This document shows positions 32,438-48,637 of a stretch of 64,000 bases of DNA, one piece after another. The notes under the pieces are model-generated. The model was not told the DNA's origin and did not search any database. It was given only the letters and a program-made list of their open reading frames with translations. The translations under genes and the position numbers were made by a program. This DNA is from Podarcis filfolensis (Eukaryota): the NCBI GenBank assembly GCA_964270895.1, contig OZ185436.1; one strand, given 5' to 3'. Numbering within the stretch: position 1 is the first letter of the stretch; the number at the start of each line of letters is the position of its first letter.

Positions 32438-32510
32438 CTGAAGGGATGGTTGTTTCTCATTCCTCTTGGGAGACTTCAGCCCACTAATTTGTTGTTGTTG
32501 CTGCTGCTGC

Positions 32511-32543
<33 letters not shown>

Positions 32544-32572
32544 AACAAAAGCTGCCTTGCTACCTGAAGAGC
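32438..32572 (-). CDS. FOXP1: FOXP1 internal coding exon (N-terminal Q-rich region), 45 codons: [45 protein letters not shown]
   Basis: Minus strand has acceptor tttctatcattattttccttcag|GCT and donor CTTCAG|gtaaga; 135 nt, phase 0/0. The translation matches the recalled human FOXP1 [34 protein letters not shown] apart from Q number and V>I, D>E, A>S. It differs from the recalled FOXP2 ([30 protein letters not shown]) and FOXP4 equivalents. Confidence 0.97.
32489..32542 (-). repeat. FOXP1: Coding polyglutamine repeat (CAG)5(CAA)3(CAG)6(CAA)4
   Basis: Counted directly: 18 Gln codons with synonymous CAA interruptions. Confidence 0.97.
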
Positions 32573-40910: not shown

Positions 40911-42959
40911 AATTTAGTTCACAGGGTTTTTTTTCCTCACAGAAAAAAACTACTTAACATTCTCCTGAGCTATCATTAAGGAACAGTGCACTGTACACAA
41001 TGAGATTCAAAAGAACAGTGTTAAAAAAGAAAGGGGCGCCTGTAATAGATTTAACATGGGCGCAAGCTCCACACGCTCACTGCAAACACTTAGCAGCCAA
41101 TAGGGGTGACAGCATAACTGCACTGTCAATATTTTGCTCCAAAGTCAGCATCCATCCCTCCACAAGATTGCAAGTACTTCTCATTTAGGCAAGCACCTAG
41201 CTGATGTGTTAAAAGGAAAAGCAAACGACATTTTCCATGGAGGTGGAGAAGTAAGCATAATTATGATAAATCCAATCTAAGTCCCATGAGGTTGGCACTC
41301 CACTGATAGGATATACAAAGCAACAGATTAATTTTTGGCTGGGAACTGTTTGAGTTTTCAGAAAGTTGAAGGCACAGAACACACAAAACTGTTGACTCAC
41401 TTTAAGCTTCCTCCTCTCTCTCTCTCTCTCCCCCCCCCTTTAAAATGATACACAATTTCCCCTTATTAAACATGGGAGAAAAACAATGCTCTTATTATTT
41501 TCCATGTATCTTTTATTAAGCCACAAAGAAAACAAGAGTTTGGCCACATGTTTGTTTGCTTGAGCTACTCCCTTTCCCTTCTGATAAATAATCAAGCCGG
41601 CCATCCAGAAAAAACAAAACCAGTGAGCTGGGAAATCTGATGGTCATCCAATAGACTGAGATACCAAGAAAGGCAGCAGACCACTTTTCCCACAGTGGGT
41701 TTTGCTGGCCAGCACCTACACTGACATCTGAGTAAATAACTTTAGTCACTCTTTCCATCTTCCCTATGCAGTTAATCTTGCTGTTAAACAAATTGTCCCC
41801 GAGGCAGCTGCAAAATATTGTTGTTTTCCCCACTGCATACTTTGGAATATTGCAAAAAAAAAAAGAAAAAGAAAAAGAAAAAAAATAGAGTTTTTCCACA
41901 AGCATGCATATTCTTAAAACGTTTGTGGCACATGCAGTTGGTCAAAATATATGTTTCTGTTCTTAAAAGTCTTAACATGGAACAGACCTCATAGAGATTT
42001 TTGTTTTTTCCCCCAATAGCCTCTCTGAGGATGCTTATTCAGACTATACATTCTTCATGCCCTCTTGCGCTTCGTGGATATGACAACGACTGCTTCAAGT
42101 GATTGGACAAAAAGTTAGATATCTGTGTTGGTGGACTTTCCTGGACACAGTACAAATTCCAAACAAACAACGCAAACCCCCCCTCAAACCTACACAATTT
42201 ATTAAGCCACGTGAACAAAAAGGAGAGGCACGGAACATGTGTTACAGCACTAGCTACAGATATTAAGCAGCATTACCTCTGGATTGAGCCAGGTGTCATA
42301 AATATTACAGACCCTGAAAATCTGAAGCAAAATCTCTGGCTTTAAAGTTAACACCTATTTTTAAACACCAGTCTGCTCTCTTTTTCTTCCCTCAAATCTT
42401 CCTGTAGCACTAGAAGTCTAGACAGCAGTCATACCACAGAGATAACACCCATGCTCATCTCAGCAGCCTGATTTTTCTTTATCGTTTGATTTGTTCAAAT
42501 ATTAACAAACGGAAAGACAACCACAAGGGAAAGGCATTTCTAAAGATGCCTACCCTCCTCAAACTCCCTCCTGCCCCTCCCTTTCCTTGCTGCCATTCCT
42601 TCTAAACTTAAGCCAGTAACAGGACAACACACAGACAAAACACATCACAAACTTACACACGCTCTAAGCGAAAGCCGTCCCTCCTCAAACAACAGTCAGC
42701 ACAGGACTTCTTGAGAAATACATTTGAAAAACAGAGCATCCCAAAGGAGGGGGGGGGGGCGAGTTAGCAGAAGGCAGCTCCCATTTCGTCTTGTTTTCCT
42801 GCCCAACAAGGCAGTAAACAACGTGAATCATCTTATTTTGCTCTCAAGCCTCAGCAATTAAATTTTCCTAGAGCAAAAGAATGCCTCTGCAAGCGAGATA
42901 GCAAGTTAAAAGTTCACCATAGCTACATGTTGTACACCCCCCCCCTCGAGCATTTAAAC

Positions 42960-43203
42960 AGAAAATATGGAGAGTTTAACAGAGCACTCTTACTGTCTGT
43001 CTCTAGTTTGCCGTCTCCTTGCTGAAGATGTATTCTGGCTGTTTCTCTGAAGCAGGGGGTTGAAGAATGGTAAAAAGATGTTTGAATAAACAGGAAGTGC
43101 TGTGCAGCTGAAGCACACACTGAAGGGAAAACACACTGGAGCACTGCCCTTTGTAGGCAACAACGGGAGGCTTGCCTCCACAGTAGCAACGTCTGCTTTT
43201 ATG
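42960..43203 (-). promoter_or_regulatory. FOXP1: Putative FOXP1 internal promoter and alternative first exon (non-coding in this species)
   Basis: Minus-strand translation gives pieces LQCVFPS / VLQLHSTSCLFKHLF / FYHSSTP / ASEKQPEYIFSKET / RQTVR / KLSIFS across shifting frames. These are collinear with the alternative N-terminus of a human FOXP1 isoform (recalled as MFQCVFPSSVLQPHSTSCLFKHLFYHSATPASQKQPEPIYSKKTEIQRQTVRAPFAKLFIFS). A CATAAAA box lies at 43197-43203; candidate donors are ACA|gtaaga (exon end 42994) and TCT|gtttaa (exon end 42960). Confidence 0.75.
43085..43099 (+). promoter_or_regulatory. FOX:ETS composite motif AATAAACAGGAAGTG
   Basis: Forkhead site (ATAAACA) overlaps an ETS core (CAGGAAGT); read directly. 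Function is inferred. Confidence 0.6.
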
Positions 43204-46200
43204 AAATGACAAAGAAACCACAAGAATTTAAGCAATTCCTCCCCCCCCCCCCCAATCTGCAAAGCTGATAGATCAGCTGGAGCTTGCAGGTAATTTCAAA
43301 GTCGTGTTTAACACTCCAAAAAAATTATATTAATTCTACCTTATTAAAGCAGCTGGCTGACGTACAGAAATCATATATACATATACATATATATGTGTGT
43401 AAAACTCAACGAAACAGCAGCAAATGCATCTTAGCTATGCAGCTAGGCAAATTCTTTATTTGTACATAGTTTTGGAAAGCTTGTTTTTCACACTCTTTGT
43501 GGTACCCACGCGCTTATGTCAATAAATGTCTGTTAAGGTTGGCGAGACTTCACAGCAATTATTCAAATTCCTTCATAACATGCCCCCCCGGCCCATTTAA
43601 AATAAATTAGACTTTTGAATCTAAGATCTTAGCAGTGTGCATTCAATATGTTCCAGCAGATGCATTCTCTTTCTTGGTTTCCTTTCAGTCACTAAAACAA
43701 AGTACCTATTTAAGTCCAGATGACTAAGTAAACTCCCTTCCCTTCAACACCACCAGCCCTCTTCCCCCACCCTCAGCCTTAATTATCAAAAGTCATGTCT
43801 TTTGACATGGGGGGGGGCAGAGATACTGTCAATGTAAGTATACTGGGTTTCGTATTTACGAACAGCAGAACAACCATATTCAACAAACCATTTTTCTAAA
43901 GGAAAAAAAAGACAGGGAGGGAAAGAACAGGAACACCCCCCCCCCCATTTTTAAGAAAATGTATTGCTGTTGTGGCAATGTGCTACAACCACTGATATTT
44001 GTTATTTAGCACAAACTCTCGGACTGTCTGTCATTCTGGGTGCTAATGCTCAGCTAAAATAACTCATTGGGAGCTGTCAATGGGATGTTTACACAGGACG
44101 CAATCTTTTCTTCATACAAGGGGATTCCCCCCCCCCTTTTTTACACTGGAATTCATCTTCTTTTGATCTCACATTCAAAGCAACAGCAGCTTGATAGACA
44201 TGCAAGTCTGAAAGCAAATCCAGACGCTGAAGATAAACCGCCAGAGTATGACAGGCAGGAGCATCTAAAGCTTATAAAAATGAAGAGAACAGCATGTCGT
44301 CTGAGTATTACAATAGCAGAAATCAAGAGACATATTAGGTGGAACTGATCAGCCACAAAAACCGTTCAAAAGGCAGATCATAGAAACAGAAAGACTAGGC
44401 AAAGTGGTGGTGGGAGGAGAGAGAGAGAGAGAATGGGAAAGATCTGCTTTAAAGAGGCCTCACCTTCTCTCTAAGCACTACAAGCTTTCTGCTCCTGGCA
44501 TGCAAAGTGGAGGAAATTGAGGGTTTCTTGTAAAAAGCCTTTACTAACTCAGCAGTTCTCACCTTTAGCTCACCAGTTAATCTTTTAATTAGGCTTCTCA
44601 ATTATGTAGGCCAAACATTTTTTTATTATTATTAATTTTCTTCTTCTTTAAATGCACAGTATGTGTGTTGCTTCTCTTTCCTGCTGTAGGTGTTATGGGT
44701 TAGTTTATCTGTAGAAACTTAGGCTGAGATCCGATACACAGTTAAGCACGCTTTAGTGCCCACTGATTCTAGTGGGACTTAAGACACCGTTAAATATCTC
44801 TGGATTGCACCCCTTATACGGTAGCCATAATGAGACTGTAGTACTCATTAATTGTGAAATCGCTTGGAAATGCCACCCATTTATGTTTCCAGGCCCTTAA
44901 GAGCGCCACTTCTTCAAAATTGGTTGGCAATCTGATTAGCTGCTGGGTTCTCTCTCTACATTGTTAAAAGACTCTACTTTGTTATTGGATATTACTTAAA
45001 TTGAACTATCCCCGAGACAGTTAAATACCAGAGGAGAAAATGCTTATGTGGAAATGATCACTAAAACTTTCTTGAGGAAAATCCATACATTTTTAATTCC
45101 TCCCCCTTCTGTATAAGCCTCTTACTTTAATTGAAGTTGCTGAATATAATGAAAAAGTAATTCTCAAACAATTTTGTACTTAGAGATGTTTGTTAACAAA
45201 CACCGAATGAGCAGGCAGTGTTAGGTTAAAGGGCAGCAGAATTCCACATTATAATTTAGCCTGTGGTTATTTCTGATTAAGAACACCCTCCGGGACAGCA
45301 AAGGAAGATCTTCTTTTGCAGCAGGCATAGCTTTTAAAATTAGCCTCTTCTGCATAATAAACCAACAGAAAAACAGTGGATTCGAAGATGCACTGAAACA
45401 ATTTAAAGTGTTGCAATCAGTTACAATGTGCTTTCTGGGGTGGAAAGCTATATGAACCAAAAGACAGAGCAAAACCCACCTTTTTGAGCAGCTCGCGCCC
45501 CAATTGTAAATATTAAAAAGAAAAATGCATCCTGGATTCTAAAACTGTTATAAGAAAGTCACCTTCTGTCATGCTTATGTAGCTATCTAATGAGCTAAAG
45601 GCTGATTATTTATCTTTAAACTGTACTAGTTTAATCTTTTAAGGTCACCACTAATCTGCTTCAACCTTTTTTAAAAATAACAGCTTTCAAGACTTGCCGC
45701 TGGAACTCACTAAACCTGGAGGCTGAATGTCATTGGAAGCGAAGCCTTTACCTGAAGCAGCTAGCTGTGCAATGTAAACACTGAGCAAAAATTCTCTGGT
45801 AAACCAAGAGGCAAACTACAAAGTCTGCATGCTGAGAATGCAGTCCATAACAAGGCTAATCTTACACCATTCCAAAGAAATAAATAATTATCATGATCAC
45901 CATGCAAGGTGACTATCCTTATTTTCTCTAGCGTGTGACTGAGGTTAGATACTGTTCTTGGCAATAATAATTTTGCCTGAACCTCCAGTTGCATTTATTA
46001 AGAAGTGTACGCAAAAGAGTGGTGACCAGGCTGTATTCCCAAGGAGGTTTGTTATTACTTTTATTTTTACCCTCAGCCGTCTTGTGGACTTGAATGTCAC
46101 CATGGACCTTGAATGTGAAACAGCTTCAAGCTAATAGCTCTAATTGCTTGAAGATGTGCAGGCAGGTGAAACCTGATCTCCCCTGGCCACTGGAGAGACC

Positions 46201-46547: not shown

Positions 46548-46676
46548 CAGGGGGTAGCCAACGTGACAGCCTCCATATGTTGTTGGATTCCAGTCCCATA
46601 AGATCCACACAGTAGTGAGGGATAATGGTAGCTGAAGTCCAGCAACATCTGGTGGGCCAAGGGTTAGCCAAACCTG
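46548..46676. mobile_element. Degenerate hAT-type MITE
   Basis: cagggggtagccaac ... gggttagccaaacctg with internal atgttgttgga / tccagcaacat inverted arms, like 33515-33652. Confidence 0.6.
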
Positions 46677-46785
46677 GATGGATGGATAGACAGACAGACA
46701 GACAGACAGGCATATATATATAGCAAACAGCGCAACTGGAAACATCTGTGGAAAACAATGAACATATTAACCCTCCTCTGTGGAG

Positions 46786-48470
46786 TAATAATAATAATAA
46801 TAATAATAATTTTGTTATTTATACCCTGCCCATCTGGCTGGGTTTCCCCAGCCACTCTGGATGGCTTACAGAATGTATAAAACATAGTAAAATATAAAAC
46901 ATTAAAAACATCCCAATACAAGGCTGCCTTCATATGTCTGCTAAAAGTTATGTAGTTCTTTATCTCCTTGACATCTGAAGGTAAGGCGTTGCACAGAGAG
47001 AGTGCCACTACCGAGAAGGCCCTCTGCCTGGTTCCCTGTAAGTTCACTTCTTGCACTTCTTGCACTGAGTTCACTTCTTGCACTGAGGGAAGACCCTCAG
47101 AGGAGGACTTCAGTGTCCAGGCTAAATGATCGGGGTGGAGATGCTGCTTCAGGTGTACTGGGCTGAGGCCATTTAAAGCTTTAAAGTTTAGCGCCAACAC
47201 CTTGAACTGTGCTCAGAAACATACTGGGAGCCAGAGAAGATCATTTAGGACAGATGTTATGTGGTCTTGGCGGCCACTCCCAGTCACCAGTCTAGCTGCC
47301 ACATTCTGGATTAGTTGTTGTTTCTGAGTCACCTTCAAAGGTAGCCCCACAAAGAGCACATTGCAGTAGTCCAAGCGGGAGATAACTAGAGCATGCACCA
47401 CTCTGGTGAGACAGTCCACAGGCAGGTAGGATCTCAGCCTGCATACCTGATGGAGCTGGTATCCAGCTGCCCTAGACACAGAACTGACCTGTGCCTCCAT
47501 GGACAGCTCTGATTCAAAAATAACTCCCAGGCTGTGCACCTGGTCCTTTAGGGGCACAGTTATCCCATTCAGGACTAGGGAGTCCCGTCCCCCCCGCTGT
47601 CCCCCCAAAACATTACTTCTGTCTTGTCAGGATTCAACCTCAATCCTTTAGTCTCCAACCACCCGCAGACACTCACACAGAACATTCACTGCCTTCACTG
47701 GTTCTGATTTGAAAGCGAGATAGAGCTGGGTATCATCCATATACTGGTGAAGACCCAGCCCAACCCCCCTGATTATCTCTCCTAACAGCTTCATATAGAC
47801 ATTGAAAAGCATGGGGGAGAGCCCTGAGGCACCCCACAAGTGAGAGCCCAGGGGTCTGAACACTCATCTCTCAACACCACTTTCTGGACATGACCAAGGA
47901 AAAAGGAGCAGAACCACTATAAAACAGTGCCCCCAGCTTCCAACCCCTCTAGCCAGTCCAGAAGGATACCACGGTATCAAAAGCCGCTGAGAGATTCAGC
48001 AGAACTAGGAAACAGCTTTCACCTTTCTCCCTAGCCCACTGGGGATCATCAACCAGCGCGACCAAAGAAGTTTCAGTCCCATGATGACGCCTGAATGCAA
48101 ATTGGAAGGAATCCAAATGGTCTGCATCCTCCAGGTGTTCGTGGAGTTGTTCAGCAACCGCCTGTTCAATCACCTTGCCCAGGAATGGATGATTTGAGAC
48201 TGGACGATAGCTGGCAATAGTGGTTTAATAACTGCTTCTTTCAGTGTCCGGGAATTCTCCCTCAAAGAGGGAATCATTCACCACCTGGCGGAGCCCATCG
48301 CCCAGAGCTTTCCTGCTCACTTTTATGATCCAAGATGGGCAAGGATTGAGGAGACAGGTGGTCAGTTTCATTCATCCAACCGGCCTGTCCACATCCTCAG
48401 AAGTAACAGATTGGAATTGATCCCATGCAACTTGCCTAGACAGGACTCTAATGCTCTCCCGGTCTTGCTT
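46786..48470 (-). mobile_element. L2 LINE, 5'-truncated, degenerate ORF2 (RT domain), about 1.7 kb
   Basis: Minus translations Q.AFRRHHGTETSL, LLNLSAAFDTV, LSPMLFNVYM, HQYMDDTQLY (YADD box), LVISRLDYCN, RAFSVVALSLCNALP; multiple frameshifts; (TTA)n tail. Confidence 0.93.
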
Positions 48471-48637
48471 CCATGGTGGAGTCTACTTCTTTCCGAATCT
48501 GGTGCTTACTCCCAAGTAGCTGAGTAAAGACTGTGCAGGCTTGCACTGCAATCCTAAGCATTTTTACTCAGAACTAAGTCCTACTGAGTTCAATAGGATT
48601 TACTCTCTGGTATGTTCCTGATAATTCTCAGAGTTTC

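Follow-up and report, generated by a model that had tools for sequence, protein, structure and literature searches.

A non-coding orthologue of FOXP1 alternative exon 6b in the lizard Podarcis filfolensis and its possible use as an untranslated leader exon

Introduction

FOXP1 is a neurodevelopmental disease gene, and its short isoforms are relevant to B-cell lymphoma. Brown et al. 2016 (Haematologica 101:861) reportedly described transcripts from internal promoters that encode an N-terminally truncated FOXP1.

The closest described systems are the alternative 5' ends of the mammalian gene. In human lymphomas, 5'RACE from exon 7 often recovered an "alternative exon 6b", which is common to the Ensembl transcripts FOXP1-009 and FOXP1-011, the latter with a predicted product of 76 kDa (Rouhigharabaei et al. 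2014, PMC3887110). Alternate FOXP1 5' exons and internal promoters have been reported as conserved in mouse (PMC7145990). The internal-promoter isoform FOXP1-iso/FOXP1S, which is N-terminally truncated, is found in human B cells and lymphoma and was reported from mouse A20 cells; in human numbering, the FOXP1 Met pair is in exon 8, which directly follows the polyQ exon (van Keimpema et al. 2017, PMC5394978). Human exon 6b and the internal FOXP1 promoters are already published, and the lizard block described here is not new in kind. The lizard block was compared with non-human mammal-type sequences and with P0002, an open reading frame (ORF) on a spliced contig, and human exon 6b was taken from its published description.

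Results

Identity and conservation of the block

The window analysed here is the whole 64-kb stretch of Podarcis filfolensis DNA (contig OZ185436.1), and its minus strand carries a FOXP1 exon 6b-like block that precedes the FOXP1 polyQ exon by 10.4 kb (Table 1). Coordinates in the text follow the minus strand unless given otherwise. A sequence-only reading of the window had reported the minus-strand triplets GTG CTC CAG TGT GTT TTC CCT TCA, which are present as described and start with the GTG at 43144-43142.

Table 1. Coordinates of the lizard features in the window
Feature	Coordinates	Strand	Basis or remark
Neighbouring, more strongly conserved non-coding element	43954..44400	-	600 nt upstream of block
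ATG-free interval, 420 nt, sense strand	42954..43373	-	interval ranking, dinucleotide shuffles
Exon 6b-orthologous block and sequence just upstream	42958..43340	-	blastn, alignment A1, phmmer
Run of 13 G, lizard only, inserted in conserved block	43241..43253	-	alignment A1
CATAAAA, TATA-like box	43197..43203	-	direct reading
GTG where the P0002 lineage has ATG	43142..43144	-	triplet and protein comparison
23-nt core, identical in 6/6 species	43077..43099	-	alignment A1
TAG, mammals have CAA or CAG there	43003..43005	-	in frame with polyQ exon if donor 42994 is used
Candidate donor ACA/GTAAGA, last exon base 42994	42988..42997	-	best donor score in 43500-42800
Orthologue of the exon-6b donor, degenerate TCT/GTTTAA, exon end 42960	42951..42963	-	alignment A1
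FOXP1 polyQ exon (human exon 7)	32438..32572	-	reads ALQVARQ at start, 18 Q

The block has 76-82% identity to five amniote contigs, three of them mammal-type (including the Iberian desman) and two sauropsid-type. With blastn against L001-L007, identities were 76-81% over spans of 260-390 nt, with E-values reaching 1e-64 to 1e-80, and over the longer spans of about 350-390 nt the DNA identity is 76-82%; against the three mammal-type contigs they were 76-77% over about 390 nt, and in all three the alignment ended at 42958, at the mammalian donor GT. Alignment A1 comprises six species, the lizard, L001, L002, L003, L004 and L006, the last being the genome of Galemys pyrenaicus, the Iberian desman (GCA_019455555.1). 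Its tree separates the lizard, L001 and L002 from L003, L004 and L006 with 100% support, and the terms used here follow that split: L001 and L002 are called sauropsid-type by their grouping with the lizard, and L003 and L004 mammal-type by their grouping with the desman. L002 aligns to the window over the coordinates, and with the identity, also seen for the 20-kb contigs L007-L009, whose proteins fall into one 90% cluster with its protein P0007; L002/L007 is GC-rich and recurs in many metagenome assemblies, which would suit a bird. The conserved blocks that flank the exon 6b block are collinear among the lizard, the desman contig and the bird-like contig.

At the protein level, an exhaustive phmmer search of 1.8 billion representative proteins with the lizard frame-3 piece returned eight matches (P0001-P0008), among them P0001 (E = 3.6e-20) and P0002 (E = 1e-13; 62% identity across 72 residues in a single frame). 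P0004 and P0005 matched in 10 and 8 short stretches of long proteins, probably through repeats or low complexity, and were not considered further. When the 74-residue lizard piece was used in a length-limited word search, nothing was returned, which the length window of that search accounts for.

That the resemblance arose by chance, or that the broken frame described below is an assembly artefact, is so improbable that it can practically be dismissed, and no point in its support was found. Chance would have to produce phmmer E-values of 1e-13 to 1e-20 against 1.8 billion proteins, besides the blastn values above, and an artefact would have to recur in the 18 public runs, from six studies, in which the 244-nt stretch is present. 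In addition, a contig from an independent public run (X1) is letter-identical to the window over 254 nt (42977-43230), so the broken lizard frames are not an assembly slip. Its homology identifies the block as the lizard counterpart, by orthology, of mammalian FOXP1 alternative exon 6b. It aligns to amniote contigs on both the mammal-type and the sauropsid-type side, and the view of the block as an old element agrees with its occurrence in the lizard, in two sauropsid-type and in three mammal-type contigs.

The mammalian counterpart

P0002 reads MFQCVFSSSVLQPHSTSCLF...KLFIFS joined to ALQVARQ, and its block-derived peptide is MFQCVFSSSVLQPHSTSCLFKHLFYHSATPASQKQPEPIYSKKTEIQRQTVRAPFAKLFIFS, followed by ALQVARQ. 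Both P0002 and P0008, the desman model, have the FIFS/ALQVARQ junction, with the block spliced to ALQVARQ at TCT/GTAAGT. The mammalian peptide cited in the sequence-only reading is therefore real, since P0002 matches it, joined to ALQVARQ, except at one residue (S for P). Like human exon 6b, the lizard block shares its strand with the polyQ exon and lies upstream of it, its sequence is homologous to the segment of the P0002 transcript that is spliced to ALQVARQ, and its flanking blocks keep the same order; it differs in that the lizard copy has no ATG, its frames are closed and its orthologous donor is degenerate.

The desman gene model KAG8510598.1 (L006:3001-27413, Galemys pyrenaicus) is named "40S ribosomal protein SA", and in it the exon-6b-like peptide runs directly into the FOXP1 polyQ exon. 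This model appears to be mis-named.

Coding capacity

At the position of the P0002 start codon, the triplet is GTG in the lizard, L001 and L006, GAG in L002, CTG in L003 and CGG in L004, and among the proteins the residue is V in P0026 and P0027, L in P0003 and P0025, and M in P0002 only. The ATG is absent in nine of the ten sampled lineages, five of these nine being mammal-type, and an intact ORF across most amniotes is thus not what these lineages show. The GTG is likely the ancestral triplet, judging from this comparison. Across the 185 nt homologous to the P0002 ORF, the six species differ by nine indels, all of 1 or 2 nt, none a multiple of three and spread over both clades. Four such frame-breaking indels of 1-2 nt, near 43120, 43077, 43055 and 42987, separate the lizard from the mammals.

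All three minus-strand frames of the lizard contain stops, and each is closed before either candidate donor. With the phase worked out from the coordinates, use of donor 42994 would place the TAG (43005-43003) in the FOXP1 frame three codons before the junction, use of donor 42960 would place a TAA (42992-42990) in that frame ten codons before it, and translation begun at the lizard GTG would enter the polyQ exon out of frame. No ORF that begins with ATG is in phase with the polyQ exon in the six aligned species, and the lizard lacks both marks of a coding alternative N-terminus like that of the P0002 lineage and of Ensembl FOXP1-011, an ATG and an open frame into ALQVARQ. Because it has no ATG and has an in-frame stop before either donor, the lizard block, as its frames read, cannot code for protein. 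At the triplet 43005-43003, the three sauropsid-type sequences each have a different stop, TAG in the lizard, TAA in L001 and TGA in L002; three of the four T-R-R triplets are stops, and this pattern is not significant and may be due to chance.

The mammal-type ORFs P0006, P0008, P0024, P0026 and P0027 each use a different mix of frames across the block, which rules out a conserved protein. Since all the indels are of 1-2 nt and the ATG occurs in P0002 only, the alignment indicates a block that is non-coding in origin, with coding use gained in one lineage; what is conserved is its nucleotide sequence rather than its codons, and the N-terminal peptide of the P0002 lineage is, on this comparison, a recent lineage-specific gain. 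The earlier description of a broken lizard frame thus stands in full, with the GTG at the ATG position, the four frame-breaking indels and the TAG, and so do the proposals of nucleotide-level constraint and of a lineage-specific peptide, given the indel sizes, the frames that differ between species and the nine lineages without the ATG.

The same observations bear on the idea of a decayed coding exon, in which the lizard would have lost an ancestral amniote alternative N-terminus by frameshifts and a stop. The lizard translation does follow the P0002 peptide closely in pieces, at the identity given above. However, the ATG is missing from the other lineages too, including the five mammal-type ones, the frames differ even among mammals, and the short indels occur in both clades. 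A decayed exon is accordingly largely refuted and very improbable.

Splice donors, the polyQ exon and the predicted start

At the exon-6b donor position, the mammal-type sequences have TCT/GTAAGT, whereas the lizard has GTTTAA, L001 GCAAGC and L002 GCGAGC, and the lizard TCT/GTTTAA falls outside the 15 best donor scores. The candidate donor at 42994 is 34 nt upstream of the orthologous one; its sequence, GACAGTAAGA, is identical in the lizard, L001 and L002, whereas mammals have GTGCG there. From these scores and alignments, ACA/GTAAGA at 42994 is the likelier lizard donor than the degenerate orthologous site. The X1 contig ends at neither candidate donor, may be DNA and is uninformative on splicing.

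The polyQ exon, to which exon 6b is spliced in mammals, is preceded in the lizard by an AG acceptor before 32572 and followed by GTAAGA after 32438. Besides this exon, a motif search in all frames of the window outside its five N runs found no canonical FOXP1 coding exon, and neither the first FOXP1 coding exon nor the exon with the Met pair was found in that search. The polyQ exon has no in-frame ATG. It does contain an out-of-frame ATG (32460-32458), formed by the Asn-Glu codons AAT GAG, which any transcript started from exon 6b must pass before it reaches the Met pair of the following exon. The sequence-only reading had placed the start of translation at the Met pair of "the next exon", which is one exon off, since the next exon is polyQ exon 7 and the Met pair is in human exon 8.

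The ATG-free interval

The absence of ATG noted earlier for 43260-42960 holds and extends further, with the minus strand being ATG-free from 43373 to 42954. This 420-nt interval ranks first of 2441 N-free intervals on both strands of the window; its dinucleotide shuffles held a mean of 4.9 ATG, with zero ATG in 13 of 5000, and its count of CAT is six. The homologous interval also ranks first in L001, L002, L003, L004 and L007 (five of the six distinct orthologous contigs), and it ranks second to third, depending on ties, in the 30-kb locus of the desman (L006). It is the longest ATG-free interval of the bird-like 20-kb contig. Five other conserved blocks of the same intron have 1.1-2.2 ATG per 100 nt.

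No other trinucleotide tested is as extreme as ATG in either the lizard or the bird-like contig, and TGA and GAT, close behind it, are also scarce in the block, so the ATG depletion is partly compositional. Sense-strand upstream ATGs, which a 5' leader is expected to avoid, are thus absent from a block where TGA and GAT are scarce as well, and the depletion fits, and is supportive of, a 5' leader.

Promoter marks and RNA structure

The CATAAAA that had been placed about 60 nt upstream of the GTG is present, 59 nt upstream (43203-43197). An A-rich box occurs there in the lizard, L001 and L002 only (CATAAAAGC, AGTAAAAGC and AATAAAAGC, respectively), the mammal-type contigs have GTGAGAGC or GCGAGAGC at this position, and the P0002 reading frame runs through it, unbroken further upstream on the spliced contig. 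As a core-promoter TATA box, CATAAAA therefore lacks conservation, with no conserved box in the mammal-type sequences. There is no CpG island at the block in the lizard; the desman contig has a weak local rise in CpG only and the bird-like contig is CpG-rich throughout, and no weight was given to either. An Rfam scan of 42000-44500 had no match in the block at E <= 1, and RNAalifold on alignment A1 gave no covariation support (covariation term +0.32), so the idea of a structured RNA was dropped.

Other conserved elements of the intron

The invariant 23-nt core of the block holds a forkhead-type site, TGTTTAT (43092-43086), followed by TCAAACA; by chance, the block would be expected to contain about 0.8 such sites. 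The neighbouring element at 44400-43954 has 86-89% identity over about 445 nt to L001, L004, L006 and L007, with a run of 62 nt (44362-44301) that is identical in the lizard and two mammals. Unlike the exon 6b block, it has ten sense-strand ATGs, and it may be an enhancer. Both this element and the exon 6b block, otherwise conserved, carry inserted runs of 13-14 G that are found in the lizard only.

Further blocks of the FOXP1 intron are conserved with the desman and/or the bird-like contig, at 58851-57451, 51010-50798, 46390-46070, 45781-45050 and 41826-41442, as well as at 35168-34888, 30681-30581, 26417-26097 and 23977-23515. Long reverse-transcriptase-like open frames, probably of a retroelement, occupy the minus strand of the intron at 46600-48500, upstream of conserved blocks.

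Discussion

Here it is proposed, with moderate confidence, that the block is a non-coding orthologue of exon 6b in which the ATG was gained in the P0002 lineage, and that in the lizard it would serve as an untranslated leader spliced from 42994 to 32572 in an mRNA for a truncated FOXP1. The exon would come after the first coding exon and before the polyQ exon, and the ancestral block would have been non-coding, as it appears to be in eight other sampled amniote lineages besides the lizard. In the lizard it would form an alternative untranslated 5' leader exon, probably with a start site of its own nearby, which would be spliced from ACA/GTAAGA to the polyQ exon. The resulting mRNA would be without the normal start codon, and by analogy with human FOXP1-iso, translation would begin at the conserved Met pair one exon downstream of the polyQ exon, giving a FOXP1 that lacks its first ~100 residues and, with them, the polyQ tract. 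The predicted lizard mRNA resembles that of FOXP1-iso/FOXP1S in omitting the first coding exon, including the polyQ exon and starting at the Met pair of the exon that follows; it differs in that FOXP1-iso/FOXP1S was shown in human B cells and lymphoma, whereas the lizard outcome is a prediction from sequence.

As a possible though less likely alternative, the block may be only a conserved regulatory element of the intron, an enhancer for instance, that is unspliced in the lizard and perhaps in sauropsids generally, use as an exon being a mammalian development. This alternative gains from the density of conserved blocks in the surroundings, several of which have 82-89% identity; because the intron is full of such blocks, several of them better conserved, conservation alone is no mark of an exon. 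Against exon use in the lizard, the strong GTAAGT donor occurs only in mammal-type sequences and is lost in all three sauropsid-type sequences, the lizard included. The forkhead-type motif in the invariant core also suits an enhancer, as do the lack of a spliced ORF in the bird-like cluster (a word search with the ORF P0007 found no spliced sauropsid variants, a weak negative) and the zero reads on 42400-43900 in three bulk RNA runs (X21-X23) that are no test of expression. Like the conserved non-coding elements of developmental transcription-factor loci, the lizard block is deeply conserved without a reading frame and clustered with others in a large intron; unlike its neighbours, it has no sense-strand ATGs, and in mammals it is part of a spliced mRNA. 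An enhancer leaves unexplained why the block coincides with the longest sense-strand ATG-free interval of the lizard window and of the bird-like 20-kb contig, when the other conserved blocks have a normal ATG density, and why all three sauropsid-type sequences share one identical, usable donor. On balance, a leader exon with its donor at 42994 is reasonably favoured over an element that acts as an enhancer only.

The leader exon may also be part of something broader, and it is tentatively suggested that exon 6b and an adjacent internal start site form an amniote-wide device, more than 300 million years old, for making a truncated FOXP1 without polyQ. The constraint on the leader would then reflect a function of its own, the "oncogenic" small isoform of human lymphoma would be a conserved physiological isoform, and the human-type N-terminal peptide would be a young by-product. 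The leader might act in FOX autoregulation through the TGTTTAT core, or it might govern how initiation gets past the out-of-frame ATG in the polyQ exon.

If the leader is conserved as a non-coding exon from lizard to mammals, the class of internal transcripts to which it belongs is likely to be ancient and physiological, and the N-terminus annotated as an alternative in one mammalian lineage is not deeply conserved. This shallow conservation of the alternative N-terminus would be useful for the curation of FOXP1 isoforms and for the interpretation of variants in exon 6b, and the finding is, in this sense, a modest refinement of known biology.
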